Source of the DNA: Zootoca vivipara
Taxonomy: Eukaryota
Reading direction: 5' to 3'
NCBI RefSeq assembly: GCF_963506605.1
Contig: NC_083281.1
Location: forward strand, 27,218,001-27,282,000
Length of the DNA: 64,000 nucleotides
The translations under genes were made by a program, and so were the position numbers. Positions within the stretch are counted from its first letter, which is position 1; each line of letters opens with the position of its first letter. The notes beneath the pieces are model-generated. The model had not been told where the DNA came from. It ran no database searches and worked only from the letters and a program-made list of their open reading frames with translations. Below are positions 12,936 through 58,480 of the stretch, piece by piece.

Positions 12936-15053
12936 TGTTCAGTACAATTAGAGTACAGATAGACTGAGCCAACCTGGTTCCCTGGTTTGGGAGCTAGTCA
13001 AACCCTTTCTCAGTGGCCACACCTGTTCAGGTGCCTTCATGGGCCCCTCTTTCCCCAGGCCCCACAGCTCCGGGTGGCTGGCCCCACAGAGAATCCATCC
13101 TCTGGCCCCCAGGTCCCAGGAGGGGCAAGTGGTCCTTGTGGGATTTTTTTTGTTTTGTTTTGACTCAGATATAGTATGAAATTAACTTGACTGGCCTTGG
13201 GTTCTTATGGGTACTGTGACTTGCTGGTGGTTGGTCAAGTTGCTGCTTTGTGTCAGACTGCCTCAGGCAGCAAAATGTCTTTGGCTGGTACTGGACGGAC
13301 TTGACCTTAACTCCTAGGGATTTTGTGTGCGTGTGTGATTTTTGTTAATTAAGGCACTATTTAGCCTGCATTGGCCTAAATCAAATGTGGCCCTCTAGCC
13401 CTCTGTCTGGCTCCTGGGACTCTTCCCAGGCCACGCCCCTCAGCAGCCCCAACTTCGTATCCTCCTTGCCTGACTGGAATATGGCTGCCTTTAATGATTC
13501 TTGCCTGCCTCCATGGAAAATAGAAAGTGTGTGTGTAGAAACCAGGCTACTATAAGGAAATAGAATTCATGCCCACTTTTGCCTTGGCGCCCCACCCATT
13601 ACTAGCCTATGGCCCCTGGAAGGTTGCTTAGGTGGGAGCGTGGCCCACAAGTCTGAAAAAAAGGTTCAGCACCCTTAGCCTAACATGTTTTAGCATGGTA
13701 TTTCTTCTCAGTTAACACATGTAGTGTGATTAAAAAACCCATTGCTTTGATTCAATCCTCAATATAGCTTTTTGGCATATTGCAATTTAATAGAATCACA
13801 CTGCAGCTTCCCTATGAAGTCCTGTCGCTCAAGGACTGCCATATTAAGGTCAGTTAACAATGTCCTGCAGAGTTTTGTTACTCTGCTTAATGCCAGCAAA
13901 AACCGATTAGACAAATTTAACTTCCTAGTGCCATAAAAACAAAGACCTTTAAAAATTGGAATTATTTGTGCCTGCTATAAGCTCTCTAAGGGGTGGCTAA
14001 TTAAGCTGCACTCTTCCTGTTCCTCTTCTATCTGAAGCATCTCTGGGAGCCTTTAAATCCCAGGATGGCAATGAAAAAACACACCTCTTTGGCCTACAAT
14101 TAGAAACCGGGGGGGGGGGGGGGATGAAATGATCTCTCAGGTGGCAGCAGCCAAAAGGAGAAATACCGGTAAGTAATCACGAGCAAATTCCATGGGGTGG
14201 GACAGGAAGAGAAACAGAGTGAGGAAATAGCTGGTTGGTGATATAGCTGCAGTGGCAAGGGAGTGAGCTGCAGCTGGCAGGAGCAAAACACATGTATCAA
14301 TTAGTCCTGCTCTAATTCTTTTGAAAAATCTTTGGGGATCTCAACTTATGGCAAGGCTTTTTAAAGTTTTCATGGTTTGGAAACGTTGCCTCAATTGGAA
14401 TGTGTTTTATCATTTTGTGTAAATCAGAGGCGGCCAACTTGTTTTGGGTCCATGGGCACTCTTGCATACCAGAGAAACTGCTGTGATCTGTTTGCCCCCA
14501 CAACCTATTAGGTTGGCTACAACAGTGCTTCTTTCAAGCCTAATTTCAGTCTGTGCAGGAAGGTGCAGCGTTTTGGAAGGGACCCCAAGGATCACCTATT
14601 CTAGTCCAACTCACTGCAATGCATATGCAGCTATCCCATACAGGGATTGAACCTGCAACCTTTTTAACGTGTGGCTGGACACAAAATGTGGGTTTTCGTG
14701 TGTGTGTGTGTGCAGTTGGAAAGCTGATAACGTGGAATTTGGTTTGGAAAAATCTGCACTTTCAGTCCACTATCTTGATTCAAAATGGCATCCAACTCTA
14801 TCCATAGATGAAAACCTGCTTCTTGATCTCAGGAACCATCACGAAAAAGGTGGTTACGGTATCTTCAGAGGGGTCCAAATGCAGAGATCGGACAAATTTC
14901 CAAATTATTTAGCAGATTTTTATATGAGATTTAAAGGAATGGTTATATGAATCACATTGTGCAAGATCAAGCCAATATTAAGCACTTCTAGTTCCACAGA
15001 ATGTAATGTGCTGACAGATAACATTCCAATGGAAATTAATGGGACTTAAAAGT

Positions 15054-15933
15054 GTCTCCCTGCCTATTTAACTTATATGCAGAATTCATCACGCGAAAGG
15101 CTGGACTGGATGAATCCCAAGCCGGAATTAAGATTGCTGGAAGAAATATCAACAACCTCAGATATGCTTATGACACAACCTTGACAGCAGAAAGTGATGA
15201 GGAATTAAAGAATTTTTTAATGAGGGTGAAAGAGGGGAGCACAAAATATGGTCTGAAGCTCAACATAAAAAAAACTAAGATCATGGCCACCGGTCCCATC
15301 ACCTCCTGGCAAATAGAAGGGGAAGAAATGGAGGCAGTGAGAGATTTTACTTTCTTAGGTTCCATGATCACTGCAGATGGTGACAGCAGTCACGAAATTA
15401 AGACGCCTGCTTCTTGGGAGAAAAGCAATGACAAACCTAGACAGCATCTTAAAAAGCCGAGACATCACCTTGCCGACAAAGGTCCATATAGTTAAAGCTA
15501 TGGTTTTCCCAGTAGTGATGTATGGAAATGAGAGCTGGACCATAAAGAAGGCTGAAGAATTGATGCTTTTGAATTATGGTGCTGGAGGAGACACTTGAGA
15601 GTCCCATGGACTGCAAGAAGATCAAACCTATCCATTCTTAAGGAAATCAGCCCTGAGTGCTCACTGGAAGGACAGATCCTGAAGCTGAGGCTCCAATACT
15701 TTGGCCACCTCATGAGAAGAGAAGACTCCCTGGAAAAGACCCTGATGTTGGGAAAGATGGAGGGCACAAGGAGAAAGGGACGACAAAGGATGAGATGGTT
15801 GGACAGTGTTCTCGAAGCCACCAACATGAATTTGACCAAACTGTGGGAGGCAGTGGAAGACAGGAGTGCCTGGCGTGCTCTGGTCCATGGGGTCACGAAG
15901 AGTCGGACACGACTAAACGACTAAACAACAACA
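15054..15933 (+). mobile_element. 5'-truncated BovB/RTE LINE (RT C-terminus, frameshifted)
   Basis: Three overlapping ORFs give SPCLFNLYAE...NINNLRYAYDTTL...YFGHLMRREDSLEKTLMLGK...[17 protein letters not shown]. (AAC)n tail and probable AAAAGT TSD. Confidence 0.95.
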
Positions 15934-19284: not shown

Positions 19285-20136
19285 TCAGCGGAGCCAACTC
19301 CTTGCTGAAGACCGTTGCCTTGCCCTTTCAGGGTAGGGTCGTCTCCCAGGCTCAGGGTGCAGAAACTGGTAGTCTTCTGCCAGGGCTACAGCCTCATCCC
19401 CATTTTCAGGGTGACGTTCCCGAACCCAGCGCTGGGCATCCTCTGGGAGGAGGTTCAGGAATTGCTCGAGCACCAACTGCTCCACAATCTCCTCCTTGCT
19501 GCGGGCCTCTGGTTTTAACCACTGGAACAGCAGTTCCTGGAGTCGCTCAAAGGCCACTTGGGGCCCTTCAGTCTCTTTGTAGGTAAAACCCCGGAAGCGT
19601 TTGCGCTGGTTCTCGGAGCCAACGTTCAGCAGGCATGGGATAGCATGCTCCACCTTGGCACATCCTCCAGCCCGGCCGGCAGCCAGACTGCTATGAGCCT
19701 GCTGCGCCTCCCCAAAGAGATCTGGCAGGAGCATGGCCCTTCCTGGCTCTCTGGCCTCCTGGCAGACATCTGGCATTTCTTTAAAGATGTCAGCATCATC
19801 ATCATCATCCTCCATCATCCGCTTCGCCCCTTTCCCTTCTCCCAAGGGCAGCACTGGAACTGACACAGAAGCCTCTGCAGCAGGGGGCACCAAGGATTTT
19901 TCAGTCTTTGGTTTCTCTTCTTGTTTTACCTGCAATCTTGGGGCTTGACGCTGATCAGTAGGCTGCTGCGTCATCTCCGAATGTTCGGCTCCTCCTCCTG
20001 AACACTCACCAGCTGCTTTGACCTCGCCTCTATCCAAGTCCTGGTGCTCAGCCATGTTGGTGCTACCTGGATCCCTCTCCTTTGCAGGATCACTGCAGGA
20101 TGCATCTAGGCTCTGCTCATTCACCTTGGTGGCCAT
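19285..20136 (-). CDS. SCAN-domain-only protein (SCAND1-like architecture), 283 aa, single coding exon
   Basis: ATG 20136 (MATKVNEQ), acidic low-complexity N-terminus, then a clear SCAN domain ([17 protein letters not shown]...[22 protein letters not shown]...EAVALAEDY) and TGA at 19285. Acceptor TTTGCAG at 20237. Upstream non-coding exon donor AAG|GTACGC at 21893. Candidate AATAAA near 18171. Confidence 0.8.
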
Positions 20137-21479
20137 TTTCCACAACAAGGCTGTTTGCTAACCCTGTAGCTATGCTAGGATGTTTGGTGAACAAAGTACC
20201 CGGTAGGTGCTGCTTTTTCTTTGCTTCAAGAAAACTCTGCAAAGGGCAAGGGGTGGAGGAAGAGAGAGAAAGAGAGCAATACAGACAATTGATATTCAGG
20301 CTGTGCTTCAGCATCTGACTAAGACATATTCTGAAATCAAAGGACTTAAAGTTAGTCAAATTCATTGATTCCAATGGCATTACTTAAGAGTATGACTTAA
20401 TGCAGGGATGAAGAACCTTTTTCAGCTTGAAGGCCACATGTCCCATATCAGTGGTGAGTGGGCACCAGAGGCAAAAGTGGGCCAAGCAACCAGTGTAAAT
20501 GCCACCTTTCTACAGTAGGCTAGTTTCTACACATATCCTTTTCTGTCCTCCATCCAAGCAAGCAAGAGTCGTTTTCAGAATTCAAAGACACTTTCCATGC
20601 AGACAAAAACTTTCAAGGAGAGTGTGAAGGCCAGTGGAACGTGTGGCCAGGAGGGGAAGGCTGAGATTCCTGGAGGGCTGCATAAGGCCCTGGTCCTGAG
20701 GTTCCTTGTATGGTAATTTTGCCTGTTTCAACACATGGCCAGTTCTGGCCAGTTTGATTCATGTGAGAAAATAAAACAAAGTAAGATTTGATTACTCACA
20801 CATGAGTGGAAAGGGAGGGCTTCCCTGAAATGGTTAAATTGGGGAGATGGGGGAAGTACCAGAACTCAGTGCACATGTAGATGCTCCCAAGTTCAACTTC
20901 AAGCACCCCTATAGATGGAAAGGATTAGGTAGCAGGTGATGGAAAGATCTCTGCTCAAGCCTCTGAAGGGCAAACAGTTCTGTGCTATAGGCTAGAATGC
21001 TGCTCCAGCATGCCCTCAAATGGGGAAAGCATTTCCGCCCCTTTTCAATAATGTGACCTAATCAGTGTGTGTGAGATCCCATTATACAGCAAAATCAGTC
21101 CAACAGTAAGATCCTGGATTCCCCCTAATTTATTCTAACCATCGTATGGGAAGATGGATAATTCTTACAAACTCAATAGAATGGATAAAATACCCCATCT
21201 TCAGAAGCCATTTGCACAAAACATTACAGCCTAGGTAAGTTTCCTCAGAAATAAATCTTAATAGTCTTCCAGTGGGGCTTATTCCCAAGTAAATGCACTC
21301 CGATTTCAGCCTTTAATGTGACTTAAGGTCCTGCATATAAATAGAGAACGAGCGCCATTGCCTGCCTTTTCTTTCCTCACGGGGCTTACAAAGAACTGCC
21401 TGCGCTTTTTCTCCCTGCGTCTTTTACGCACAACTGAAGCCAGATATTCCACTGAGGTCAATGAGCCACGGAGCTTAGG

Positions 21480-23050: not shown

Positions 23051-24673
23051 TTGCAGGGCAGCTTCAACCTTTGGTAAACATTACAAGCTGGATGTGTATG
23101 CTTCTGCCAAGGAATCCTTCAGTAGGAGGGTATTAGAACAGGTAGTTTATCAGTAAAGTAGCAGCCCCACATCTTGATCCCCCATGTCAGTTAAGCTTTG
23201 GGAAATCCCATTCAAGGCTCCCCTCCTCACTGCAGGAAAATGTGACATTGGACCTACCAAGAAGGTTCATTTTCTGCAGTGAATGAAGGGGCACTTGCCC
23301 ACCCTAAGAGATTTGAGTTTGATCTCCACTGCAAGCTTATTGCTTTTTTCTTGTTTGTTTTCTCTCTAATCAGCAATTTTTTTTAGTTTTCTCAATTCTG
23401 TTCTCTGGATCAGTTGTTTTTTGACATTTGATCTCCGTAGGCTTGAGCTTGGATACCTTCAACTGGAGAGGTCGCTTTCCTGCTGCAAGGTAAGAACAGC
23501 TCTAATTTGCATATTCCTGTTTAGTAGAGTGAGTGAGAGGGACAACCCATGCAAGGATCCCCTCCATTCCCTGCAGAAAAGGAACCTTCACAGTAGGTCT
23601 AATGACACATTTTATTAATTTTAAACTCATTTATTAATTGATGTTCCTTGTATATTATTAAATTATGGTAATTCTCTTTGGTTACCCACAAAATAAATGC
23701 TCCAATTCAATTATCTGCAGCTGTCGTTTATATATACCTTTTCTGGAGGAGTCCCAGGTTCAATTCCTGCTCTATACCATAATTCAATGAATTTCAAGTC
23801 GCAGGGTTGGGAAAGACTCTTACCCCAAAGCAATCCTATCAGCTAGAAAGACCAGTAGTCCGACTTCACATAAGACAGCTGCATCAGTTCAGATAATGAA
23901 GGTGTGCTTAAGGCACTGAGATGTTGCCCGTGGGTCAACCCCCCCCCCCGTAAAACATAGCATGAGAAACTATCCATCACCACCATGAAATTAAATATGT
24001 GTACTGTATTAGTTCACATCCACTTCTTGCTACCCTTGCATATTTCATCTCTCCTCCTCTCTCCACACCTGCCTTTTTTTTGCTCATACCTTCAAGCACT
24101 ATGGTAAGAACCAGAGTCCATGGTTCTTTTTGTAACTTTCAAGGTATGAAAAATTGACTAAACATAAATACTAAACTAGACCATTTCACAGCCTTTGCCT
24201 AGTACAATGTTCCCTCTGGAGGCAGTGTGCACCTTTGATTTAGGTATTTCTGACTTGAGGCCTGAACAGGAATCTCTGCCAATTGGTTCAACACCCATGC
24301 TATTTAGTGCCCACAGACAATATACAAAAACGTTCCCAGTTGCTTTATTTAGAGCTAAGCAGGAAAGAAACAGGTACTACAGTATAAAAACAAACAAATC
24401 CTAGAGTAACATTAGAAGGACAGTAATGACAGTCAACATTTGCACCACAGCAGGCAAAGAGCTTCAGCTCTAGAGCCTGCTGCAGTCTGAGCAACTTACA
24501 TGATATGCTAAGGGTAGGGGTCAGGGACAAAAGATAATGAATGTAGCAAGATTGGCTGTCTCAGACAACCAAGAGCTGAAGGAGCTTTTTCCTTTTAATT
24601 CAGGTCCTCATCCTAGCGTCAATATTGCTGCTGAATTTCTTGATGCTCAATTTCTTGATGCTCAGCTTATGTT

Positions 24674-27600
24674 TCAGAAATGCTGAGGAGAGAGCAAAGT
24701 TAGTATCCAATTAAACGTTTTATATATATAACAGTCAGGAAATGAAAATTTACCACAGAAATTAACAGCAGAAATGGTTAAGATTTTCCAGAAACCAATG
24801 CCACTTTCAACATTCCTCAACTGCTTCAATCTGTCCTCCATCTCCCAAAATTATCCAATACCAGATATTCAGAAATTTGCTTTAACTTCTCATTAAGAAA
24901 CAAGAGGAAACCAAACTATTAAAAGAAGACTTAAGAGTCCTAATCACTGTCTTTTTCATCTGCTACCTGGATAATTACTTCTGGAATGGAACTTTGGCCT
25001 GGTCTGCTCCCACACTGGTTGCCTTCCCCAAGCTCCAATGAAGCCACCCAGTTTGAGCAGACCAAGTGATCCTGTGAGGGAGCTGTATTGGAGCAGGGAT
25101 GAGGAACCTGGTGACCTCTAGATGTTATTGGGCCACTGGACCATTGGATCCCTTATCACACACCATGTTGGGTGGGGTGATGGGAATCCAACAGCTGGAA
25201 GGCTACAGGTATCCCAACCAGGCCAGTGCAGACCGGGCAGTGGGGCAGGCGGGTACACTTTTCCCAGGCTTTGGAGGACTAAGCTGATTGGGGGGACCCT
25301 CCAGGGAGCGGCTGCTTTTCTGGTTGAGTTTATAACTTTAATCTAACAAGACTCCCACCCGAGGCCTCAGACAAGCTCTTCACAGGCGTGATCCCAACCC
25401 TGATCTAGACCAAGAGAAAAGGGAAGCAGTAAGCCCTCTTCAGGCTAGATTGCCTACATTTTATGAATTATTCAAACTTATCAGTATGGAGAGAGGCATA
25501 ATAACAAGCATTTGTTGCTGAAAAAGAAAAAAAATGAGAGGTGGAAATAACAGTTTGCTTTTAAACATGGATAGCAAAGAGAGGAGACTTACATTTCTCT
25601 CTCGCCATACTGGCTTGCTGGGAATTTCGGCAATATTCTGGGATGTGTTTGTTGCGGACAGCGACTTCCTGTTGCTGAGGATGTGCACAATAGTGCCAAG
25701 AGCTTCTGATAAGTCTTGTAAAGAGGTACCACTCAACCCATATAGTGTGGAAGCTGTACAAATGAAAAAATAAATATAACAATCCTCACTGATGGAGCAG
25801 TCTGTACGACTTCCAGGTAGCATTGCCAACAATTCTTATTAGAGCAGTGGTAGTTAACCTGTGGTCCTGCAGATGATGTTGGGATTACAGCTCCCATCAC
25901 TGACCATTGGCTATGCTTGCTGGGGGGGGTACAGGTTGGCCACCCCCAGAACATTCCTTTCTGTCATCTTTCATTAGCCAATAATCTCTTTTCTTTTTTG
26001 AAGTCTTTTAATATACACCTCATACCCCTCTCTTTTTATTGCTGCACTAGCTTTATGGATCAACTTTTAAAACCCTGGAGTGCAAATCATTAAGTATAAA
26101 GTTCTTCACTCCCAACTTCTAGCTCTCATCTGTTATCATTCTAACATTTCTCTCTTGTCTGCTATTGTTCACATCTCCCCTTCTGCCTAGTATTGTGCCA
26201 CTCTCTATGTCTGGAATAATCACTGTCTACTCACCATTTGCCTCCCCTGCTTTAAATCCATGCTCAAAACCCACTTCTGCAAAGCCTTTTCTAGATCATC
26301 ATACCATGACATCATCTGTTCTTTGCTTGTGTTCACCTTACAAACTGTGCCATTTTTAATTAAATTTAAATTTACATACAGTTGTACCTCGCTTTGCGAG
26401 TTCGTCGATCCCCAAGGCACGCTTCTGCGTGTGCGCGAAGCGTCGATAGAGCACTTCTGCGCACGCACACACTGCACGAATCGCTTCTGTGCATCCGAGC
26501 GCCACGGAACCCGGATGTAAACACTTCCAGGTCCGAGGTGGTCGGAAACCGAAGCAGTTGCTCCCCAAGGCGGTCTCAAACCGAGGTACCACTGTATACT
26601 ATATCTAATACACAATCTGTATTAAATGTATATTCTGCTTTTCTATGGAAAGTGGATTATGCTAATTTATTGAATTTATATACCCTGTTTCTCATATTTT
26701 AAGACATACCCATAAAATAAGCCATAGCAGGATTTTTAAGCATTCAAGGAATATAAGCCATACCCCGAAAATAAGACATAGTGATAGGCGCAGCAGCAAT
26801 GCCGGCCGCGGCAGGAGGAGGAGGAAAAAAATAAGACATCCCTTGAAAATAAGCCTTAGTGTGTTTTTTTGAGGAAAAAATAAATATAAGACATGTCTTA
26901 TAATATGAGAAACACGGTACGACGGTTTGCAACATATAGAAATAAAAATACTTTATTGTCACTACAAAATAAAAAAAATCCTTCCAGTAGCACCTTAGAG
27001 ACCAACTAAGTTTGTCATAGGTATGAGCTTTCGTGTGCATGCACACTTCTTCAGATACTTCTTGTATCTTCAGATTCTTCTTGTCACTGTACCACTTGTT
27101 TACAGTGAGATTAAACGAGCCCCCCCCCAACAATCTCTCAGTCCTTATTATATGAACACAAAATACAGTAACATAGTAATATAAAGACAATACCCCACAC
27201 CCCACTGGAGTATGCCACCATGGGGGTTCTCCCACTTCATGCCATAGCATCTAGAAGCATCTGCTACATCACTCAGCATCAACGCGCTGTTCACATGGCA
27301 GGTGCCCCTGGACATTATGACAGAAGGAGGCAGTGGGACTTGCCATGTGGGAATCTTGTTTTCACTGGCATTCCCATGAGTGGGCATAATAACGGAACCC
27401 ACCAATTCCATGCAGTCACAATATAGGTGCCTGAGAGGCAACCCATGGCACCACAATGAAACAACCTCTGTCTGCTCATGCCAACAGTTACCTTGGGTTA
27501 GTCGGAGCTCCTCTCGCACAGTGTCCAGCTCAGCCTTTAATACGGTGCATCTGGCACATGGAGGTAGCATTCTGGAGCCTGGTGGCCCATCGTGGGTGGT

Positions 27601-30600
27601 GTCGCCACTGCCGTTTCCACTCCAGGGAGAGTGCAGCAACATCTCAATGCTGTCACTGAGTGAAGGTCTATCTGCCTCAGGAGATATGTGACCATCATTC
27701 CCTCCTTGGGGGCAGGACGCATTGCCATCCTTGTCAAAGACCAGTTGAGATGGCCCAAGGCCAGCTGTTGCTTTCTGCTCGCAGGATGAATTAGAAGAGA
27801 GCACCCCATTCAGAGCCTTTGAAACCCTACCACTGCCCTCCATCTTAGCTTCCCCCTCAACCAGACTCTCTACAGCCACAGCAACATTGCACCCGGAAAC
27901 AGATCTTCCCCGCCCTTTCGCTTTCCCAGCTTGCTTTCCTGGTGCAGGGGTTGGCATTTGCTTAGCTTTCTCCCCAGCCTCAGATGTCTCCTCTGAGTTA
28001 TCATTCGGTTTCCTTTGCTTTGTTGCTGCCTCTCCATGTTCTCCATCTTCTGTGGCCACGGTCCGTTCCCTTGGACCTGACTTTGGTCTCTTCCTCAGCC
28101 GAAGGTGTGCTTCTGTACCTGAAGATGGAGAATAAGTTTATCTTGAGAGACCTGCCAAGATAGAAAAATAACAGATGGGCTTGTGGTTAAGGCCCTAGGC
28201 TGGGAATCAGAAGATCTGGGTTCCAGGCCCACAGATGCCGCAGGGCTCCACTCACCCCTAGAGGACAAGGTTTCCTTATTTAACAGGTTTCTTAGGATAC
28301 AAATCATCAGGAAGGGCCATGAATAATCATGAATACAGTCCTCTGAATGCAAAAGATGCTTGGCAGTCTTCCTCTACCACAAAAACACTGAGGTGGGTTA
28401 CCGTTATTTCCATATTACAGATGATTAATGGAGACTGAAAAAAGTGTATTCTCAAGGCCCACTCAATAAGGACACCTAATGTATCACATTCTCCTAAAGA
28501 GAATTCACACTCTGATAATAAGGATGTATTTTCTCCTTTGAAGCGTGGCATATCTTTTCCACTCCATGTATACAAAGAAACATACCTCCGCCACCCTTTC
28601 AATATAACTCTTAATAAAATTTCCCTTAAGGTGACTTGGAAGATAGTTTTTCTTCATGTTAAAAATCTGACTGACTGACCCTTTTAGAGTCAGGCAGGAT
28701 CTTTCCCCCTGAAGATCAGATAGGCTAGTGAATATAATTTTTGAAGCGTGAAGCAGGACACAGTCCAGGAGATCTCATCAAAATAATTTGAGGCATTTTG
28801 AGAAATTGTTGTAATTATCACACAACCCTAGCTACAACTTATATTTGCATAGGTGAAAGATTTATACGATCTGAAGAGAAGCCAGAGTATGTTCTTATTA
28901 CTTGCAGGCATGGCAATTTATTGTTGTTGTTTAGTCGTTTAGTCGTGTCCGACTCTTCGTGACCCCATGGACCAGAGCACGCCAGGCACTCCTGTCTTCC
29001 ACTGCCTCCCGCAGAAATGGCAATTTATAAATCTCTTTAATACCATTTTCATTGTTTTGGTGGTTCCTGTGGTTTCATCTGCTATTTTGTTTGTTGACAG
29101 ATGACATGTAGTTGTGGGATGAATTGTATTAATGCTCTTGTTTAGCAGTGCAGGATTTGACTCACTAGACGTAAGTCCCATCCAACTCTACAAAAATTAA
29201 TAATTATTTTTTTATGGAAAAAATAATTACCAATCAAAGCATTCTTACAACCATGATCCTGTATCTAGCAGTAGTTCCAATCATCCCAGTGTGAAGAGGC
29301 AAATATGGAAGGGTTGCAAATTCCACGCAAAAACATTTCTGCTGTCCTCAACATAAATAATTGGCCAAACCTACTATAGGTTTACTATACTCTCTGGCAC
29401 CTGAGAAGGCAGCATACTGTAGTCTCCTGTAGCATGAAGTGCTCAAAGGAGAAAGTGGTAGAATTCGGAGTAAATTTTATTTTAGAGCCCTTATGTTAAG
29501 CAGATGAAAGCAGGAGCAGGTTTACTGCCAAGCAATAGATGTAATTATTATGAGGGGTGGCAGGCGAGGGAGAAATAATGTCAGGCATTTCCTCAACAAG
29601 TAATCCCATGAACCTGGAAAAGTAAGGATAGAGTTCTATGACCTAATGCAATCTAGGAAGGCATTCCTTACCAACTTTCCTAAGGTTCTCTTGACTGCCT
29701 TTGATGCAAGATGGTCTCCGATCCTCATCCAATTCTTCTTGGGGGGAATCTGCTACCATGTCATCGGATATCACCCGTGCCTGGAACAGTAAGAATGCCA
29801 CATCTGCATTCATCACCTTCTGCTCAAGTTAACAGGCCCTTTAGTTTCACCAAGGATGTCGGTGTTGGTCCCTGTTATCTGTGAACCATGGATGATTTAA
29901 ACTTGCTGTTTGTTACTGGAGAGCCAACTCATTCTAAATGTTCCTTAAAGACTGAATCCTACTGTATACACCCGAGTCCTAATAAGACTGAGTGTATCCT
30001 ACCTTCATGGATGTGTTGCTAAGAATCTGATGTTTTGTACTAATGAAATGTCCGTTGTTTTTAAAAAGCAAACTCTGCCATCATAGTTGTCTAGAAAAAG
30101 TTTGAATAGTCACAATAGCAGGCCAGGTCTGCCCTCCCCATTTTGGCCAAGCAACATCCAAGACATATATGATGTGAAGTATGGAATAGATAAAGGCAAG
30201 GCTTGGATGAAAGGCGCTTTACATGTGCTGACATTCAGCTGGTTGGTGGTGCCTGCAAAGCCCCTTGCACAGTGCTTTCCAAACACCACAGACTATCAGC
30301 TGATTGTCAGTGCTTGGGAAGCAATGCACTCAAGGCTCCTCAAGCACCAACAATTTGCTTGGATTGTCAGGGCTTGAAAGTGCTGTGTGGTTTGATTGTC
30401 TACCTGCCAAATGTAGCCTGCCAGTAAGCAGATAGATCCAGATTGCCATCTGTATCCAATTCTGCACCCCTGCCATACAGTGTTAACCAAAGGCCAAGAA
30501 ACCCGAGGGAATAGCAGGCATGGTTTCCAGGAATCAGAAGACAGGCTTCCGTGCCTTGCAGAACATACTGTTCCTGCCTACTCAATCCCCAACCTGTCCC

Positions 30601-33600
30601 CACCTTGCCAAAAATCTCTGTCCCTTCCTTCTAAAAGCTGAGGGCTAGAATTCTTAGGTTTCTATCTAGTGTCCTTTGGCCAAGGAGAAACCTGTGTAAA
30701 GTCAGCTCCAAGCAAGAATCAGAAACAATCAGAAATATGATCCTACCTGGTCCCTTTGCCTCTTGGACTCAAAGTGAAGCTGAAACCTCTCTGCCAGGGC
30801 CACAGCCTCCTTGCCATTTTCTGGTTGACATTCACGCACCAAAGTCTGGATTTCGTCCGGCAAAATATTCAAAAACTGCTCAACCACCAGCAGCTCCATG
30901 ATCTGCTCTTTGCTGCGGACATCTGGCCTCAGCCATTGATAGGAAAGTCCCCACAGACACCTGTAAACCTCTTGGGGTCCCTGGGCTTCCTGGTAGCGGA
31001 ACTGCCTGAAAGACTGACGCTGTGTCTCTAAGTCTATGTCTGTTTCCAGTGCTTTAGCACAATTGCTGCCACAGAGTTGTTGGGTCTTGCTATGAAGTTG
31101 GCCTTTATCTTGCTGTCCAGAACTCTGGAAGGAATCACACAATGGATTCAAAACAGAGAGGTGTGCCTCTGGGTTATCACCCTTTCCTGTTGTCCCCATG
31201 TGCCCTGCCATAGGAGGAGGCCTCAGGCCTGTCAGCAACTCTTGGCATTGGTCTCCAGGAGACTGCTGAGATAGTAGCCATCTCAGTATCTCTTCAGCAG
31301 TCCAATACTGCACGTCAGGGGGCACTTTCACTGTTCCTCCAAGTGCCTCCTTCACAGGAAGTCTGGTTAAGCCCTTTCCTGCTACATCAGCTTGCATTAT
31401 CTGTTCTAGCAAAGCCTGTAGCTGTGAGCCAGGGCCTGCAGCTGTTCCTGATCCATTCTTTGTTGACATCTGCAAGGTGTGCAAAGCGTTGGTACAAGCG
31501 TTGGAGGTAGGACTGGCAGGAGGTCGCTGAGTCAGTGCTTGGACAAGCTCGGTTTGCTTCTGAAAAAGCTTCTCAAAGAGCTGGGCCTGGAACTCCCTAT
31601 CCTCCCGGCGCATCTCCCTGTCATGCTGGATGAACTCTGCTAAACTCTGCTTCTCCTCTGCTTGGTTGGCAACCTGTCTCTGCATTCTCTGCACTTCCAG
31701 CTGATGTGAACGCCCATATTTCTGCCCAGTGCCCCTTGAGAAGCTTGACTGCCCATCTCCCTGAGCTTTTTGTTTCCGGGTTCGGAGGTGGGGACGTTGG
31801 TCGAGCATGGATATGAGATGTCTTGGTGCAGGCTGGGTCTCCATCACTATAGGAGAGGCCACATCTATAAGGAAAGCAACAAAGCACAATGAATATCCAG
31901 AGAAATGCAATGGTGTGCATATACCCAGGATACATTCCATCTTAGTGACAAAGCATGCTGGTCTATAAGGAACGAGAGCTGAGTCAAACTTCCAAAAAAG
32001 CAACCACTACAATCCTCACGAGATTAAATCACTTCAAAATGCATGTTAAGAAACCAAGCTTTTGTACTACATCAAATATTCCCTGCATGTAGAGAGTTAG
32101 TGCCTAAGGGGAAAGTGCTTTAGCTTTTTGACCTGGGAGAGCATTCAGACACACAACATCCATGACCTACATGCTAGAGAGTTCTATGAAGAATGCACCA
32201 CATGCTTTCTTCTGAATGCATGATTTGGCTTTTATTTGATTGTCATGTACCTTTTGCAGGATGAGTCCAAGGGCAGTGATCTAGGATATCTATTTAGAAA
32301 AACTAAATCCACTGTGTAACATTTTAAAATGTAAGCATATGCAGAATCACTTTTTAAAACGTGACCCCATGAGTGCAAAAAAGTTTCTGCTGGAACTGAC
32401 CCTGAAATTGTGGCCAAGGTGTAGGTAAAAACAGCTGTACTGCAGCTACCCAGATGACAAATTATGAAATTATGATGGAATTAGTACAACTTGCACCCAC
32501 TAGGATGCATATGTACATATGGTGCTAGGAGCTCTTGACCTTTAAGAGACAATCTTAAAGTTCAAGATGAATCAACTGGACAAGGCTAACAAACTAGAAA
32601 GAGAGCATGTTATTTATAATGGAGGATCCTGCGGTCCAAAGGGACGAAAGTGCTGCAATTCATTACCCTAGTTGGTGTCATAGTAATCTCTTTCATGGAA
32701 TACATTCATCTTGGACAGGTGCCCCAACTGTCTAAGTCTAAGCTATTTTTGGTCTGATTATTAGACAATAAAGTGCAATTTTGTGATAGGCAAAAAAGAT
32801 TACAATACAAGGGGACAAAGACAGCAGAACTTGAGAGGCATCTAGAAAGTCTTCTCAGGAAAGCAGAGGAGAAGCAAGCACTTGACACATATGTGGGTGC
32901 TAAGAATATAGGGAAGTGTAGGTCAGAGGTCTTGGAGGCTAAATACCCAGTAAAAGGCTCTAATTAAACAAATAATTCAAATAAAAGATGTCAGCCACAC
33001 CTGAGTATCCTTCAGGAGGGGCTCTGCTGAAATAAACCAGGCAAAACGAACAATGGAGCTTACCAAGCTCAGGTGATATTTCATCTTCCGATTCCTCTTC
33101 TTTCACTTGAACTGGGATGACTTGGATCTCACCGAAGGCATCCTGAGACTCTGCCTGGGCATAGCTGAATTCATCAGTCCCTTGGCTTTCAGAGGCAGCA
33201 GTCTGTGACAACCAGTGGCCAGAGACCTGAGACCCCCACCGCTCACTGATGCTGGACTGGGTCCCCCAGGGCTCAGATATAGAAATACCTTCCTGTCTGT
33301 CTGCAGAGATACCGGACCCCTCACCAGCTTCTGAGGGAAAGCCTGGTCTGCAGTTTATATACTGTGTCATTATCTGGTCGATCTCATCATAAAATGGACA
33401 CTTGATGGGTGGTCGCCCAACTGAGTTATTTTCTTTTGCTTTCCGGTAAGCCACTTTCAAGCCTTTCATTTTCTCCCGGCACTGGTCCCCAGTTCGGTAA
33501 ATGCCCATTTCTGCGAGGCGCTGGGAAATGCCATCATATACTGCACGGTTCCTCCCATGAGAACTAAGATCGTGAGCGACTGCTGCCTCGGTCCACAGGG

Positions 33601-33670
33601 CAAGGAGCACCTTGATGTGCTCTGCTGGCCAACTGGCTGCCCGCTCTTGTGGTCTGTCACGCCTCATCAT
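24674..33670 (-). CDS. Myb/SANT-like + coiled-coil + SCAN protein lacking C2H2 fingers; complement(join(24674..24682,25593..25753,27492..28118,29672..29780,30747..31864,33064..33670)), 876 aa
   Basis: Six coding exons, all GT-AG with matching phases (1,0,1,1,0); 2631 nt open. First coding exon has a Myb_DNA-bind_4-like domain (W...HIKVLLALW...[38 protein letters not shown]...[11 protein letters not shown]), with an in-frame upstream stop at 33773-33775 and acceptor at 33976. SCAN at ~30780-31030. Last acceptor has a perfect TACTAAC branch point. Non-coding exon 1 donor CAG|GTAGGT at 36978. The last three exons are less certain than the first three. Confidence 0.8.
26379..26594. mobile_element. 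Tc1/mariner MITE
   Basis: TA-flanked CAGTTGTACCTCG...CGAGGTACCACTG. Confidence 0.75.
26683..26917. mobile_element. Tc1/mariner-type MITE (second family)
   Basis: TA-flanked TIRs CCCTGTTTCTCATATTTTAAGACA / TGTCTTATAATATGAGAAACACGG; internal AAAATAAG repeats. Confidence 0.8.
26965..27060 (-). mobile_element. Penelope-like element terminal fragment
   Basis: Near-identical to 12847..12935 in reverse orientation; carries the hammerhead motif. Confidence 0.75.
27021..27058 (-). ncRNA. Minimal type-I hammerhead ribozyme motif (Penelope-type) with intact core
   Basis: Minus strand reads GUAU-CUGAAGA-A-GUGUGC-AU-GCACAC-GAA-AGCU-C-AUAC: stem I GUAU/AUAC, CUGANGA and GAAA cores, palindromic stem II, palindromic minimal stem III AGCU, CUC cleavage triplet. 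Confidence 0.75.
28921..29013 (-). mobile_element. Short BovB/RTE 3' end
   Basis: Reverse complement of the 3' end of 15054..15933; TSD ATGGCAATTTA(T) on both sides. Confidence 0.9.
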
Positions 33671-35580: not shown

Positions 35581-38448
35581 ACCTCAAAGGCTAAGCTTAA
35601 GAGAAACTAATTCTACCAGTTTGAAGAAAGAAACTAGCTGTGCATTGTGTGTAGCTTCATTGGCAGCAGCATCAATCCACCCCCCACCCCCAAAGCAGTT
35701 TTTCTCAGGAAAAAAGTTTTTCTAGATGGCTCCAAAGGCCACCTCCAATTCTAAAATTCAGGTGTCCAGATGTAGTGGAAGTACAAAAGAGTTACACAGT
35801 GGTTATTTTTGTTTGTTGTGTAAAAAAGGGAATTTTAGCAAATGCTTCTTTCCTTGCCTCTATGCAACAAGGTAGACTGGTAGAACTACCACAATTCCCA
35901 CTTCTACATAAACAATTCAAGGCAAATGAGTTTTATCTGCCTTTGCATCTGGTCTCCAGCCACTTTTCTGTTTCTGTTTAAGTAATGTGTGGTATGGGAG
36001 AATCTTAAAGAATAAGGTTGTGATGCGACTGGTGCAATCTGCCTGAGATTAGGGTGCAAGCCACTTGTGCATTCAGACCTTCCCGCCTGAAACCACTTGC
36101 TCCCTGAAGAACAAATAAACTCCAAGATCTGTATCAGAGTGCTTTTTAACGTATGGTGTGGATACGAGCACTATCTCTCAGCCTAGCCTCCCTCGCAGGG
36201 TTGCTATGAGGAGAAAAATCAGGTCTGCATATGAAAAACGCTGCACCCTTCCTTGAGGAGGATTGAAATATAATAAGCAAAACTTACAAATCAATAAACC
36301 TAGGAAAGCCAGCTTTTCACCCAGCTTGCAGAAAGGCTGAGCTGCAGTGATTAGCCAAGGGTCCTGTTTTAGCTCCAGACACTTAAGATTACGTTTATTT
36401 ATTACATTATTATTGATAACAAATTTATTATCATCACTATTATTTATTAGGTTTTTATGCTGCCCTTCATCATAAGATCTCAAGGGGGTTCACAGAACAA
36501 AATACAGGACAGAAACAAGTAAATAATTAAACAAAACAGAAAAAACAATACCCTCCTTTCACACATGTATAGATCCCCCTGGACACCCCAACAACAACAC
36601 CAAAAGCCCCTTTTGAAAACACGCGTTTCTTACTGCAATTATTTATATAGTCGTAGATCTAGGAATGTATATATTTCAAAATGCACTTTTTAGAAAGGGA
36701 CTGAAGCCCCCCGGTTTCTCTCAACAGGCCGCTGAAAAGGGGCGGGAGAGATGCTCTCGGCTGAAGGGCAAACGGGTACCGTTCCCTAGACAGGGAAGGA
36801 GCCCGCTTAGGCCAAGGAGCCCCCTTCACCCACAGCCCTGGCGCCGCCCCTCGCCGCCGCCATTCCCCGAGGCAGAAATCACCGCAGGCGGCCTCCCTCC
36901 CCGCCGCCGGAGGGTGGACGGAATCGCCTCCCCCTTCCCCACCCGCTCCAGGGCACCGAAAACCACCTCCCTACCTACCTGCTGTTAAAGAACCACCATA
37001 AAGGGGTGGAGCCGCTCCGGCTGCGAGCCCGCCCACAGCCTCCGCCAATAGGTGAGCCGGGTTGTTTCGGCTGTGGGGGCCAATCATTGACTCGTCGGCT
37101 TGTCACTCACACGGGCAAGAAGCGGGGCTCGGGGGTGGGATTAATCTCTCTTTCTCTCTCTCTCTCCCCCTCCGCCTCCACTCCACCGGTATCCGTTTCT
37201 TGTCCCAGGAACCGGCGACAGGAGTTGGCTGAGAGCTCTTGTCGATCAGAGGGAAGTGGGCGGGGAACGGAGAGGCCATTCGGCCGGCGCTCCTATCAGT
37301 CAAGAAAGGCAGCAAGGTGGGAACGTACCGTAGGGTATCTTCTTACCATCTGCCGGGCCTGTTAGTAGAGATAGGAAATGTTGTAGAATGACCCGCGGTG
37401 TAAATGGATGGTGCCCAGGAACCTATTAAAACACGCGCGCGTGCGCACAGCCCATAGAAAGCAACGGAGAAATCCCAGTATTGTACCCTGCCTGTTACTG
37501 AGCAGCAGGCACATCCATCCCCGAAGCAGATGTATCTTTCTAACTTGAGTCTTTTAATTTCGAGTGGAAAAGAGATTTATTTGTTAAGACGTTAAAATGC
37601 GCCGTTTTCTGTAGGCGCAAACTGCCCTGGTCCGGGAGGGGACAACGCTACCGAAGCGACTTTCATTCCTGCAACCGGTGCGGCGTTTTGCAAGTCCGGA
37701 TTATGAGTTTGGGGGATCCAAACCACTCCACGACCCCAAGTGCAACCTGCTGCAAGATTAACAGAGGGGCCGCAGCGCAGGGCTGGCGCGAGCCGATTAT
37801 CAGCATCCAACAGTGGACTTTGCTTGCATACTTACACACCATGCCTAGAAAACGCACACGCGCCCCAGAAAACACCCTGGGAGCTAAGTTTAAGGGTGCT
37901 GGGAAGCATAGCTCTGCAAGGAGCAAACTACAGTTCTCGGGGTTCTCTGGCCTGAGTGGGAAATGTGCTTTAATATATGCACGCAACGCAAGCCCGTGCA
38001 TCTACCACTGGAATTTGCACTGTCGGTGGTCATTAAACGATTACAGGCTTCGTCCCTGCAAGAAGCGACGCTCCGTCCATTCGACGAAACGGGCTCTTAG
38101 CCCTCGAAAGCAAACGGCCACGAAGAAACAGGGCGCCACAATTACTCGGAGGCGCCACAATTACTCGGGCCTCCAAATGTGGTTGGGGCTCCCCAGCTCC
38201 TCATCCAACAATCCGAAAAGTCCCCCGCCCTAAGTCCCGTTTCCAAATAGGCGAGTCCCGGTTGCAAAGCGGCAGCGGGGCCTACGACTCCCATCACCTC
38301 TCCCCCGCAACCCCGCCGGCTACTTTGCCCGCCCCCTCATCACTTTTCTCGAAAAAGGACTACATCTCCCGTCAGCCTCTCTGCCAGCTTCCGGCAGCTT
38401 CTCCCGGAAGCGGCGAAGAGAAGAAGCCTGGCCTTGTTAAGCTGAGAA

Positions 38449-49519
<11,071 letters not shown>

Positions 49520-57029: not shown

Positions 57030-58480
57030 TTATTTTTTAAAAATTGATTCTTCTCCCGAGCTGCGCAGCAAACGCAGCCTGGAATTCTGATTCCACCGAA
57101 GGAAGACATGCGCTGCCGTCCCACTGATTCCTTCAAGGTCAACGCGACTCCCCAGGCCTCCCTGATCATTTCCCCCGCCCGCAACGTTTTGGGAGCGGAA
57201 GAACCCAGGAGTCCGGGCTGCCAGCCCCGGTCCGCTAGACCCCTAACTTTCTCTGGCCCTGGCCTCAGCCAGGAACCCAGCTTCCCAGATCCATTTCCTG
57301 ATCCAGAACCGAACCCCACGAGAACCCAGCCTGCTTTGCCAGCCTAACTAGGCCGCTCCCCCCTCTTTATTGGGGTGCGTGCGTGCGTGCGCGGAATAGA
57401 GCGGACCCAGGAGTCCCGGCTCGGTTCCCCGCACCCCCCGCCTCCTCTCTGCTCTGGCCCCTCCCCCTCCGGCTTGGCTTCGCTGCCGCGCTGCGCGGTG
57501 CTGGAGCCGCCGGGGGTGCGCGCAACGAAAGGGGCGGCCGCCGCCGCCGAGGAAGGAGGAGGGCGGGGAGGGACGGAGGGAGCGCGGGGCCTGCCTCTCC
57601 TTCCTCTTCCTCTGCGCGGCACCAGGGCCGCCGGCCGGGACCAGCGCTCGCCTCTCCATCCCGGCCGGGCGGGGAGGGGGGAGCCGCCCGCCCCGCTGGC
57701 CGCCTTGGGCTATGTTCGAGTAAGGAAAGCGCGGCGCGGGGAAACCGGGGTGCGTGGCCGGCGGGCGGGAGGGATCGGCGGCGAGCGATGCCGGCCGCGT
57801 CGGGAGCGGGGAGGAGAGGGAGGATCGCGCCGAGGGAGGACGGCTCTTGGCTGCAAGCGGGGGGCGGGTAGGTGGGGGGGGGTAGGGGCTGCGGAGATCT
57901 CTCAAGCCGGGCTGGGAAAGGAAGGCGACTGTCTCCTCCTCCTCCGGGGCTTGTGCCCGCTCTCCTAGCGCTTCGGAAGCCGGACTGGTCACTTGTCAGC
58001 TGAGAGGAGGAGAAGGATGGATGGAGGGAGAGGGATGGACACAAAGGAGCTGCCGGGAAGGAGGGAGAGGGCGGCTGGCAATGGAGGGTTGTGTCTGCGT
58101 GGGACCCGGGAAACGGGTTTCTTTTTCTTTCTTCCTCTCCCTTTTCGCGGAGGTGCAGATCTTCCAAAACACCCGGCGGGGCGGAGGAGCAAAACCCTTG
58201 GCTCCTCTGCCTAATCTCCGAAAGGCGCTGGGGGAGAGGACAGCGCGCGCGTTTGCAAGCTCTTTTTGCAAAGTCTTGAAGGATGGGGGAGAGGTTTCAG
58301 ATCGGTCAGCCCACCCCCCGCTGCACTCCGATCTCTCCCACCCACTCTCTTTGCTACAGGTGCGTGTTTATCAGCGTCTAGTTCTCTCATGGTGTGACAT
58401 CAGTCTGTGTTCAGCAGTGGTAGCAGCGTGGTCTTTGTAGCGCCATCGTGGGGGAAGCCTTTGTTCCGCGTGTCCCTCCA
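57030..58480 (+). promoter_or_regulatory. CpG island promoter / 5' UTR of the downstream plus-strand gene
   Basis: Very high GC and CpG density, GC boxes and GCC repeats; ends in a strong donor at 57720. Confidence 0.85.
57712..57719 (+). CDS. GRAMD1A: 8-nt first coding exon ATG TTC GA (MF-D/E), consistent with GRAMD1A (Aster-A); remainder beyond the window
   Basis: GCT-ATG-TTC-GA|GTAAGG inside the CpG island. From memory, GRAMD1A begins MFDTT and flanks the squamate venom-serine-protease locus. Exon 2 was not found before 64000, so identity rests on 8 nt plus recalled synteny. Confidence 0.55.

Follow-up and report, generated by a model that had tools for sequence, protein, structure and literature searches.

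The window analysed here is a 64-kb stretch of Zootoca vivipara DNA without any N. On its minus strand lies LOC118087551, which had been annotated earlier in RefSeq as an uncharacterised gene and is thus not a new gene. Its isoform X1 (XP_034976203.2, here P0045) has 876 aa and carries the RefSeq name 'uncharacterized protein'. The phase-consistent six-exon ORF of 876 aa proposed in an earlier note on this DNA is borne out by canonical splice sites throughout and by an exact match to this protein, exon by exon. The coding exons are exon 1 at 33670..33064 (aa 1-202 plus one base), exon 2 at 31864..30747 (aa 203-575), exon 3 at 29780..29672 (aa 576-611 plus one base), exon 4 at 28118..27492 (aa 612-820), exon 5 at 25753..25593 (aa 821-874) and exon 6 at 24682..24674, which adds only His-Phe-stop; a terminal HF or HL is retained in other squamates. 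The in-frame translations match residues 1-202, 204-575, 576-611, 613-820 and 822-874 of P0045 in consecutive order, and the split codons D, G and A (n = 3) and the terminal HF agree with it by eye. Acceptors are AG preceded by pyrimidine tracts, and the GT donors are, in order, G/GTAAGC, CAG/GTAGGA, TTG/GTAAGG, AAG/GTAACT and AAT/GTAAGT. The exon phases sum to 2631 nt, or 876 codons and a stop. Exons were searched singly, and full-length searches used the database proteins P0045, P0007 and P0146. The nearest downstream AATAAA on the minus strand is at 24344-24349. Rfam at gathering thresholds gave no match in the window, and a scan for bacterial promoters and terminators, which is irrelevant to a eukaryotic locus, found nothing. 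A proteasome-ATPase exon neighbours the gene.

Exon 1 contains the start codon, a Myb/SANT-like trihelix domain and an acidic disordered linker. The trihelix domain (Myb_DNA-bind_4, PF13837) occupies 33371..33634 on the minus strand (aa 13-100, Pfam E 5.5e-19), and its 68.8 bits against a gathering cutoff of 27 place the protein among trihelix members. Among PDB sequences it is matched best by 2ebi, the trihelix of plant GT-1 (E 0.0018). The domain is 98-99% identical among squamates and 77-83% identical to turtles and the alligator, and a basic stretch of 16 residues in the helix-3 region is invariant or nearly so. The near invariance across squamates points to a fixed host target for the domain, rather than to an arms race or an evolving transposon target.

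Exon 2 encodes a basic motif, a long helix, a short conserved helix and a SCAN domain. The long helix (31530..31712, minus strand, aa 254-314) is a single helix and a candidate coiled coil with a near-invariant motif of 31 residues. It reaches a pLDDT of up to 94 in an AF2 model and has invariant columns in an alignment of 37 family sequences, with identities of 84-93% within squamates and 62-75% to turtles and the alligator. The coiled-coil string quoted earlier is present within this 61-residue helix. The short helix, of 12 invariant residues (31275..31310, minus strand, aa 388-399), corresponds to alignment columns Q388-L399 and to a helix at 392-401 in the AF2 model. The SCAN domain (30768..31028, minus strand, aa 482-568, Pfam E 2.4e-35) lies at the end of the exon, which terminates at a donor typical for SCAN exons. 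It scores 120.6 bits against a Pfam cutoff of 27, as expected of a SCAN protein, is modelled at a pLDDT of about 90 and superimposes in Foldseek on the ZNF24 SCAN dimer (3lhr) with a TM score of 0.87 and 49% identity.

Exon 3 is probably a degenerate KRAB-A relic, as judged from profile comparisons. Pfam KRAB at E values up to 1 gave no match in the exons or in the 37 family members. An HMM of turtle KRAB-A boxes (163 sequences) gave E values of 0.3-3, with the best match always in the exon-3 region, and a sliding hhalign scan of the family alignment against the 163-sequence KRAB-A profile peaked in exon 3 only (probability 75.5%, P 2.4e-5, 44 aligned columns). Most positions of the KRAB-A hydrophobic core are replaced, and conservation of the exon is low, with identities of 39-64% within squamates and of 19-28% to turtles and the alligator. 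The KRAB-A-like exon claimed earlier is therefore not a Pfam call but does stand as a relic in the profile-profile scan. The relic follows SCAN, so the back half of the protein looks ZKSCAN-like.

Exon 4 encodes a basic RLRKRPK motif, a long disordered region, an SPW motif and the first C-terminal helix with an invariant CxxC. Exon 5 encodes the second C-terminal helix, with a stretch of 25 residues. The C-terminal block is 85-87% identical in squamates and 51-73% identical to turtles and the alligator. AF2 predicts a helix at 829-850 and a two-helix hairpin with the invariant CxxC. A reading of the CxxC as one half of a C2H2 finger was rejected, since no histidines follow it at the distance that a finger needs and the segment is itself a helix. 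In Foldseek and PDB profile searches SCAN alone was matched, with no solved relative for the C-terminal CxxC hairpin or the long helix. The domain order given in the earlier note (Myb, coiled coil, SCAN, KRAB-like exon, low-complexity region, CxxC helices) is thus correct.

Zinc fingers are absent, as had been claimed. Pfam finds no zf-C2H2 in the exons or in the 37 family members, which sets the protein apart from SCAN zinc-finger proteins, and a six-frame regex scan of the whole 64 kb found neither an intact C2H2 motif nor a TGEKP linker, and hence no finger relic. The position of the KRAB-A relic, after SCAN, favours descent from a SCAN gene whose fingers were lost; such a loss is unproven, as neither a remnant of fingers nor an orthologue that has them was found.

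The gene extends further upstream than first described: the coding exons were correctly placed, but an alternative first coding exon lies at 36979..37087 (minus strand, ATG at 37087, donor G/GTAGGT, phase 1). Spliced to exon 2, it gives isoform X2, which has 710 aa and lacks the Myb domain. By tblastn, aa 1-36 of P0089 are 100% identical to this exon, and Podarcis and Lacerta annotations likewise include X2 isoforms. The existence of an isoform that skips exon 1, together with third-party models that lack SCAN or Myb (P0007, P0008, P0042, P0078), might suggest that a small Myb gene and a neighbouring SCAN gene have been merged in one model. Orthologue transcripts argue strongly against such an artefact. 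The 881-aa orthologue P0097 lies on a 3315-nt assembled contig and is co-linear across every exon junction, and the 587-aa protein P0003, on a 3072-nt contig, runs from Myb to SCAN. An 881-aa ORF on an assembled contig of 3.3 kb means that mRNA of the orthologue has the Myb exon joined to the SCAN exon, and the contiguous ORFs on these 3.1-3.3-kb contigs, which link Myb, SCAN and the C-terminus, support the joining of the exons in transcripts that the earlier note required. The exon 1 donor and the exon 2 acceptor are both in phase 1, and the full-length model recurs in about 35 species. A merged model has next to no probability.

By sequence comparison, LOC118087551 is the Zootoca member of an old and still unnamed family of genes in non-avian reptiles, and not a lineage-specific chimera. 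Forty-odd reptile proteins of about 860-910 aa combine PF13837 and PF02023 (SCAN) in identical domain order and are fingerless. They come from snakes, lizards, geckos, turtles (two tandem copies) and the alligator; none was found in birds or mammals. Pfam detects SCAN in 37/37 family members, Myb in 35/37, and KRAB and zf-C2H2 in 0. Over its full length P0045 is 73-89% identical to other squamate members and 43-50% identical to those of turtles and the alligator, which places it in the orthologous group. The domain blocks are far better conserved than the linkers. The turtle protein P0008, which has no SCAN, was considered as an ancestral SCAN-less form and rejected; because all other turtle models have SCAN, it is treated as a mis-spliced annotation. 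The gene had been presented as a new chimera in this genome with an unrecognised architecture. The first of these views does not survive, since the gene is in RefSeq and its family is kept across squamates, turtles and crocodilians. As to the second, the architecture is known to RefSeq and UniProt as unnamed models, and so belongs to a widespread family at the level of the databases, but it is undescribed in the literature searched, which yielded no paper describing a SCAN protein with Myb in front.

The same two Pfam families occur together in mammalian ZSCAN20, ZSCAN29 and ZKSCAN2, where SCAN is followed by two Myb_DNA-bind_4 repeats and a C2H2 array. In ZKSCAN2 a KRAB follows SCAN, as the relic does here. 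The shared families, and the annotation of the Podarcis lilfordi copy as 'finger and SCAN domain-containing 20', would be consistent with a reptile orthologue of one of these genes in which the domains were rearranged and the fingers lost. The order in LOC118087551 is, however, reversed, with a single Myb domain preceding SCAN, no fingers, and a coiled coil and a C-terminal module of its own. The earlier note was right that the mammalian-type relatives run in the opposite direction, SCAN, two Myb and fingers, as in the platypus ZSCAN29-like P0254 and P0255. Among 255 proteins compared, Myb-first order is limited to the trihelix-SCAN family, and 16/16 SCAN-first proteins lie outside it. The Myb domain is only 30-36% identical to that of the platypus-type SCAN-first protein, as against 44% to that of turtle P0146, and the family is not nested in the SCAN-first clade of the domain tree. 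A proteasome-ATPase neighbour is also not known from the neighbourhoods of mammalian ZSCAN20, ZSCAN29 and ZKSCAN2. Orthology to these genes is very unlikely.

SCAN without fingers has precedents. PGBD1 and ZBED9/SCAND3 join SCAN to a transposase-derived domain and have no C2H2 array. LOC118087551 resembles them and SCAND1 in its fingerless SCAN, and differs in that the partner of SCAN is a trihelix, placed N-terminally, and in that the family is confined to non-avian reptiles. SCAND1 has been cited as a host SCAN gene without zinc fingers (bioRxiv 10.1101/2025.03.03.638093).

The front half of the protein resembles other genes. MSANTD1-4 and NAIF1, which derive from Harbinger Myb-like proteins and have proposed DNA- and protein-binding roles (PMC9392472), have a single N-terminal trihelix with acidic, basic and helical segments behind it, as LOC118087551 has; they are about 275-560 aa long and lack SCAN, and the likeness is judged on layout. 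Residues 1-314 of LOC118087551, a trihelix followed by a helical segment, fit the Harbinger-type layout of ~300-350 aa and are co-linear with P0220. The closest Myb domain found is that of P0146 (Lepidochelys kempii), in which the coiled-coil motif is also co-linear. P0146 belongs to a fingerless sister family of Myb-coiled coil-KRAB proteins, including 'trihelix transcription factor DF1-like' isoforms, which have an intact KRAB, lack SCAN and the C-terminal CxxC module, and are seen in turtles only. A Harbinger origin is plausible for the Myb module.

The earlier note went further, proposing that an apparently complete Harbinger-type protein had been taken over by the host and fused in front of a SCAN gene, whose zinc fingers were lost. 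This would be a double domestication, as the note has it, or a triple one if KRAB is counted. The layout of the N-terminal half (trihelix, acidic, basic, helix), its co-linearity with small reptile proteins (about 300-350 aa) that have a single Myb domain and in some cases are multi-copy in Gopherus, and a tree in which the nearest Myb neighbours are small single-Myb proteins and not ZSCAN20/29 speak for such a fusion. So does the KRAB-A relic immediately after SCAN, which is ZKSCAN-like. ZSCAN20 is itself listed among putative Harbinger derivatives (PMC9392472), and SCAN descends from a Gmr1-like capsid (bioRxiv 10.1101/2025.03.03.638093). However, the Harbinger link is one of layout, and outside Myb the protein is only weakly similar to the small proteins (23% identity across 325 columns). 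The window holds no relic of fingers and the 37 family members include no fingered orthologue; capture of just the SCAN and KRAB exons is equally possible, and the event is ancient and not particular to the Zootoca genome. We regard this fusion as a real contender at somewhat below even odds.

We favour another reading, with a probability of roughly three in four, in which LOC118087551 is the Zootoca orthologue of an old reptile trihelix-SCAN family of modular regulators, with a Myb module joined to ZKSCAN-type exons. The modules are, in order, an N-terminal trihelix, an acidic linker, a basic NLS-like motif, the 60-residue helix, the short invariant helix, SCAN, a probable decayed KRAB-A exon, a disordered region and the two-helix CxxC module. 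The protein would be a nuclear transcription or chromatin regulator that reads DNA through its trihelix rather than through a C2H2 array. SCAN may mediate dimerisation, either homotypic or with the many reptile SCAN zinc-finger proteins, and the long helix and the C-terminal helices possibly assist. The Myb-less isoform X2 would be a SCAND1-like, DNA-blind partner or competitor. As to origin, a Myb and coiled-coil module, as in small trihelix proteins, may have been joined to the SCAN and KRAB-A exons of a ZKSCAN-type gene, probably before the split between squamates and the turtle/crocodilian lineage. This scenario is based on a domain tree of 90 columns, in which support past the first node is modest, and on the 75% profile-profile probability for exon 3.

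DNA binding by the trihelix is not certain, because the SANT/Myb/trihelix domains of Harbinger Myb-like proteins bind protein, namely the transposase, besides DNA (PMC9392472). The trihelix could then be a protein-binding module, and the protein a scaffold linking a further factor to SCAN-ZNF complexes. In the AF2 model (mean pLDDT 47) and the alignment, the protein is mostly disordered between modules and its conserved helices are short, which is typical of interaction motifs; the trihelix reaches a pLDDT of only 60-72, with the trihelix helices present. On the other hand, the nearest relative with a solved structure, the trihelix of GT-1, binds DNA, and the conserved helix-3 region is basic. 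A scaffold is improbable.

A more ambitious version of the trihelix-SCAN regulator is rather unlikely. The protein would be a reptile-wide regulator predating the split between lepidosaurs and the turtle/crocodilian lineage, in which the SCAN (formerly KRAB) cassette of transposon-control finger families was rewired to a fixed trihelix reader that descends from Harbinger. As a hub, the protein would tie the SCAN-ZNF network, which evolves fast, to a single conserved set of sites, and the Myb-less isoform would be a built-in antagonist. If this holds, the turtle Myb-KRAB genes would mean that KRAB and SCAN effectors were coupled more than once to a DNA-binding domain other than zinc fingers.

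SCAN and KRAB are usually treated as effectors of C2H2 zinc-finger proteins. In the trihelix-SCAN family they are paired with a different and very strongly conserved putative DNA-binding domain at the other end of the protein, and the combination is retained across the main non-avian reptile lineages. The family thereby offers a natural test of the role of SCAN when no rapidly evolving array of fingers is coupled to it, and a candidate case of several transposon-derived modules built into one host gene.

A second SCAN exon lies in the window at 19.3-20.2 kb. It was considered as a tandem paralogue like that of turtles and rejected, as its similarity is confined to the SCAN part; it is therefore regarded as belonging to a separate SCAN gene.

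LOC118087551 is encoded on the minus strand by the six coding exons that the earlier note had proposed; canonical splice signals are present at all of them, and the RefSeq model is matched exactly. Exon 1 (33670..33064) opens with an ATG start and ends at the donor G|GTAAGC, exon 2 (31864..30747) has a pyrimidine tract before its acceptor and the donor CAG|GTAGGA, exons 3 (29780..29672), 4 (28118..27492) and 5 (25753..25593) are bounded by canonical signals, and exon 6 (24682..24674) reads CAT TTC TGA. Joined in phase, they total 2631 nt, or 876 codons and a stop. The window has no N runs, and its exons were used as queries singly, one at a time. Their translations are exact substrings of the 876-aa RefSeq protein P0045 (XP_034976203.2 / XP_034976204.2, 'uncharacterized protein LOC118087551 isoform X1 [Zootoca vivipara]'), at residues 1-202, 204-575, 576-611, 613-820, and 822-874; inspection shows that the three codons split between exons agree too, as does the terminal His-Phe. 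The window is thus DNA of the common lizard. The gene also has an alternative first exon at 36979..37087 on the minus strand (ATG at 37087, donor G|GTAGGT), which leaves the same phase, 1, as exon 1. In RefSeq isoform X2 (P0089, 710 aa) this exon is joined directly to exon 2 and the trihelix is omitted; the annotations of Podarcis muralis, P. raffonei, and Lacerta agilis include X2 counterparts. The gene therefore extends about 3.4 kb past the upper boundary given in the earlier note. The alternative exon sits within a GC-richer block.

LOC118087551 is a member of the SCAN-domain and trihelix superfamilies. In Pfam searches of the in-frame exon translations, exon 1 encodes a Myb_DNA-bind_4 domain (aa 13-100, E 5.5e-19), the end of exon 2 encodes a SCAN domain (E 2.4e-35), and exons 3-5 have no match. 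An AlphaFold2 model built from a 37-sequence alignment of the family, that is, the reptile proteins with Myb_DNA-bind_4 followed by SCAN and no zinc fingers, is largely disordered (mean pLDDT 47). Within it are predicted the helices of the trihelix (residues 16-106, pLDDT 60-72), a single long helix (residues 254-314, pLDDT up to 94) containing a near-invariant 31-residue motif, short helices (residues 348-361 and 392-401), the SCAN domain (residues 478-583, pLDDT about 90), and a C-terminal helix pair (residues 800-818 and 829-850, pLDDT 64-70) with an invariant C799-x-x-C802 just before it. The top Foldseek match in the PDB is the ZNF24 SCAN dimer 3lhr (TM 0.87, 49% identity), and Foldseek recognized nothing there outside the SCAN part. 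Matches of the family profile to PDB sequences are likewise confined to SCAN domains; exon 1 alone weakly matches the plant GT-1 DNA-binding trihelix (2ebi, E 0.0018). The invariant 12-residue helix at aa 388-399 and the CxxC two-helix C-terminus have no solved relative and no Pfam relative.

The family is widespread in reptiles. A word search with exon 2 returned lizard and snake proteins carrying PF13837 and PF02023. A second search, with the 530-aa SCAN-less Naja model P0007 as query and candidates of up to 928 aa visible, yielded about 45 proteins, roughly 860-910 aa long, in which Myb_DNA-bind_4 precedes SCAN. Their hosts are snakes, anguimorphs, lacertids, iguanians, a skink-like lizard, an amphisbaenian, a tegu, and geckos among the squamates, and outside them many turtles (two adjoining loci per genome) and Alligator sinensis. 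The P0007 word search brought up no bird or mammal protein, although a conserved orthologue would have many words in common with the query. The source names are all placeholders ('uncharacterized protein', 'SCAN box domain-containing protein') or borrowed ('finger and SCAN domain-containing 20', 'zinc finger BED-type containing 9', 'retinitis pigmentosa 1-like 1').

Two database proteins bear on the splicing of the gene. P0097 (881 aa, in the cluster of P0003) is encoded on a 3315-nt assembled contig and P0003 (587 aa) on a 3072-nt contig; the orthologue behind these contigs shares about 73% of its residues with the lizard protein. Introns that add up to more than 6 kb and contain in-frame stops separate the corresponding exons in the window, so the contigs must be spliced mRNA. 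P0097 is co-linear with P0045 across all exon junctions. The refuting outcome named in the earlier note, Myb and SCAN exons that are not joined in transcripts, thus does not arise in this orthologue.

Conservation is concentrated in blocks. When the Zootoca protein is compared with squamates (Anolis, a sea snake, and a gecko) and with turtles and alligator, identities are 98-99% and 77-83%, respectively, for the trihelix, 84-93% and 62-75% for the long helix, 90-95% and 75-80% for the 12-residue block, 87-89% and 47-59% for SCAN, and 85-87% and 51-73% for the C-terminal helices, with the linkers down to 8-27% in turtles and alligator. The invariant columns of the 37-sequence alignment cluster in exactly these five blocks. 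The pattern, at the protein level, suggests strong purifying selection on discrete blocks.

The absence of zinc fingers, first noted for the lizard gene, holds for the entire family: Pfam finds neither zf-C2H2 nor KRAB in the 37 members searched at E up to 0.1, and a regex search of all six frames finds no intact C2H2 motif or finger linker in the 64-kb window, and hence no relic of lost fingers. Exon 3 was described as KRAB-A-like in the earlier note. In a plain HMM search of the family, a KRAB-A profile built from 163 distinct turtle KRAB boxes scored E 0.3-3, which is not significant; the best match was always the segment equivalent to exon 3, directly after SCAN. An hhalign profile-profile scan of 46-residue windows along the full family alignment gave a single peak at residues 571-616 (exon 3 is 576-611), with a probability of 75.5% and P 2.4e-5, in which 44 aligned columns cover the entire KRAB-A box; windows outside 551-646 each gave P >= 0.11. 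Exon 3 and KRAB-A have in common the skeleton V..(D/E)(D/E).A......L.E.QR........EN....LG, but the hydrophobic core positions of KRAB-A are mostly replaced. We read exon 3 as a putative decayed KRAB-A exon that probably does not function as KRAB, in agreement with its place among the least conserved segments of the protein; the KRAB membership of the gene would be vestigial at best. In ZKSCAN genes KRAB-A comes after SCAN, so the back half of LOC118087551 resembles a ZKSCAN-type effector cassette.

An exhaustive P0007 search of 1.84 billion representatives, clustered at 50% identity such that divergent orthologues could be hidden, gave 1323 hits, of which 150 were listed. Among the matches listed, only the Myb domain is matched outside the reptile orthologues, the coiled coil and C-terminal tail are matched in reptile proteins only, and the high-scoring non-orthologues form several groups. 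One combines Myb with zinc fingers. Another is SCAN-first and ZSCAN29-like, as in platypus (SCAN at 52-144, two Myb repeats, six fingers). Teleost proteins form a third: P0100, P0101, P0136, and P0166 carry TINF2_N with 6-8 Myb_DNA-bind_4 repeats, so that a telomere-protein domain is combined with an array of trihelix domains, and one has C2H2 fingers as well. In a further, recurrent group, P0214, P0218, P0245, P0242, P0180, and P0080 an N-terminal Myb_DNA-bind_4 is fused to a class I/II aminotransferase domain; one member, on a 3.5-kb contig, is probably a real mRNA.

Custom-built Myb and SCAN HMMs classified the 255 proteins in hand: Myb precedes SCAN without fingers in 48, all of them in the LOC118087551 family, and SCAN precedes Myb in 16. 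In a Myb tree (314 domains, 90 columns) the family members form a single clade (support 0.988). Closest to this clade are P0146 and small single-Myb reptile proteins (0.898), and ZSCAN20/29-type domains branch off at the next level out, weakly supported (0.61). P0146, an uncharacterised Lepidochelys kempii protein, has an N-terminal trihelix 44% identical to that of the lizard, a co-linear coiled-coil motif (ALAKQFLEQERQLREEDRAQQRELVQQL, against a 27-residue lizard counterpart), and an intact KRAB box, without SCAN or fingers. Its relatives are turtle proteins annotated with Myb and KRAB, or Myb-only isoforms named 'trihelix transcription factor DF1-like'. This fingerless trihelix/coiled-coil/KRAB family of turtles (P0146, P0256, P0257, P0320, P0350, P0358, P0369, and P0373) is, by sequence comparison among the matches listed, the closest apparent relative of the N-terminal half. 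The reptile single-Myb proteins (300-350 aa; Elgaria P0220, Emydura P0217, and Gopherus P0234) are co-linear with lizard residues 10-330, with weak alignment beyond the Myb domain. Gopherus flavomarginatus has at least three near-identical single-Myb loci (P0234, P0250, and P0251) on three different contigs, which may be Myb-like ORFs carried by transposons. Harbinger Myb-like proteins and the MSANTD/NAIF1 proteins derived from them share the layout of these single-Myb proteins, and ZSCAN20 is a putative Harbinger derivative (PMC9392472). By analogy, we infer that the Myb module of the family may be of Harbinger origin.

LOC118087551 is not a SCAN zinc finger protein (SZFP), because it has no fingers, and it falls outside the SCAN-first ZSCAN20/29/ZKSCAN2 group because its domain order is the opposite and its Myb single. 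As in PGBD1 and ZBED9, SCAN is coupled to another module, here putatively derived from a mobile element. Literature searches found no description of the Myb-then-SCAN architecture. RefSeq and UniProt already contain this architecture for dozens of species, and the earlier note's 'new system in this window' is therefore an overstatement.

The protein is conserved, fingerless and almost certainly nuclear, and it has one trihelix, candidate helical oligomerisation segments, and a genuine SCAN fold. The trihelix would provide DNA recognition, and SCAN would mediate homo- or heterodimerisation with the reptile SCAN-ZNF repertoire, which is expanded (bioRxiv 10.1101/2025.03.03.638093). The Myb-less isoform could then be a SCAND1-like competitor that does not bind DNA. 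The near-absence of change in the trihelix among squamates favours a fixed host target over a transposon arms race.

The window contains a second SCAN-domain exon, N-terminally extended by a long acidic stretch, at 19288-20157 on the minus strand (Pfam E 1.6e-34). Its likeness to LOC118087551 is limited to the SCAN part (about 45% identity). It is accompanied by no exon for Myb, KRAB or C2H2 within the window, and it may thus be another fingerless SCAN gene. A reverse-transcriptase fragment at 15052-15495 on the plus strand (RVT_1, E 4.8e-09) resembles an RTE/BovB-type LINE; such elements are common in squamates. At 7045-7440 on the plus strand, an open frame encodes part of a trypsin-family serine protease (Pfam Trypsin, E 2.3e-13) and is probably one exon of an adjacent protease gene. 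The block at 57348-58440 is GC-rich (GC 0.55) and has long open frames that overlap on the two strands; this is typical of a CpG-island promoter region and is no coding signal. The proteasomal ATPase OB-domain exon at 43885-44400 on the plus strand (Prot_ATP_ID_OB_C, E 1.7e-08) belongs to a gene for a 26S proteasome regulatory subunit, whose transcription runs away from LOC118087551.
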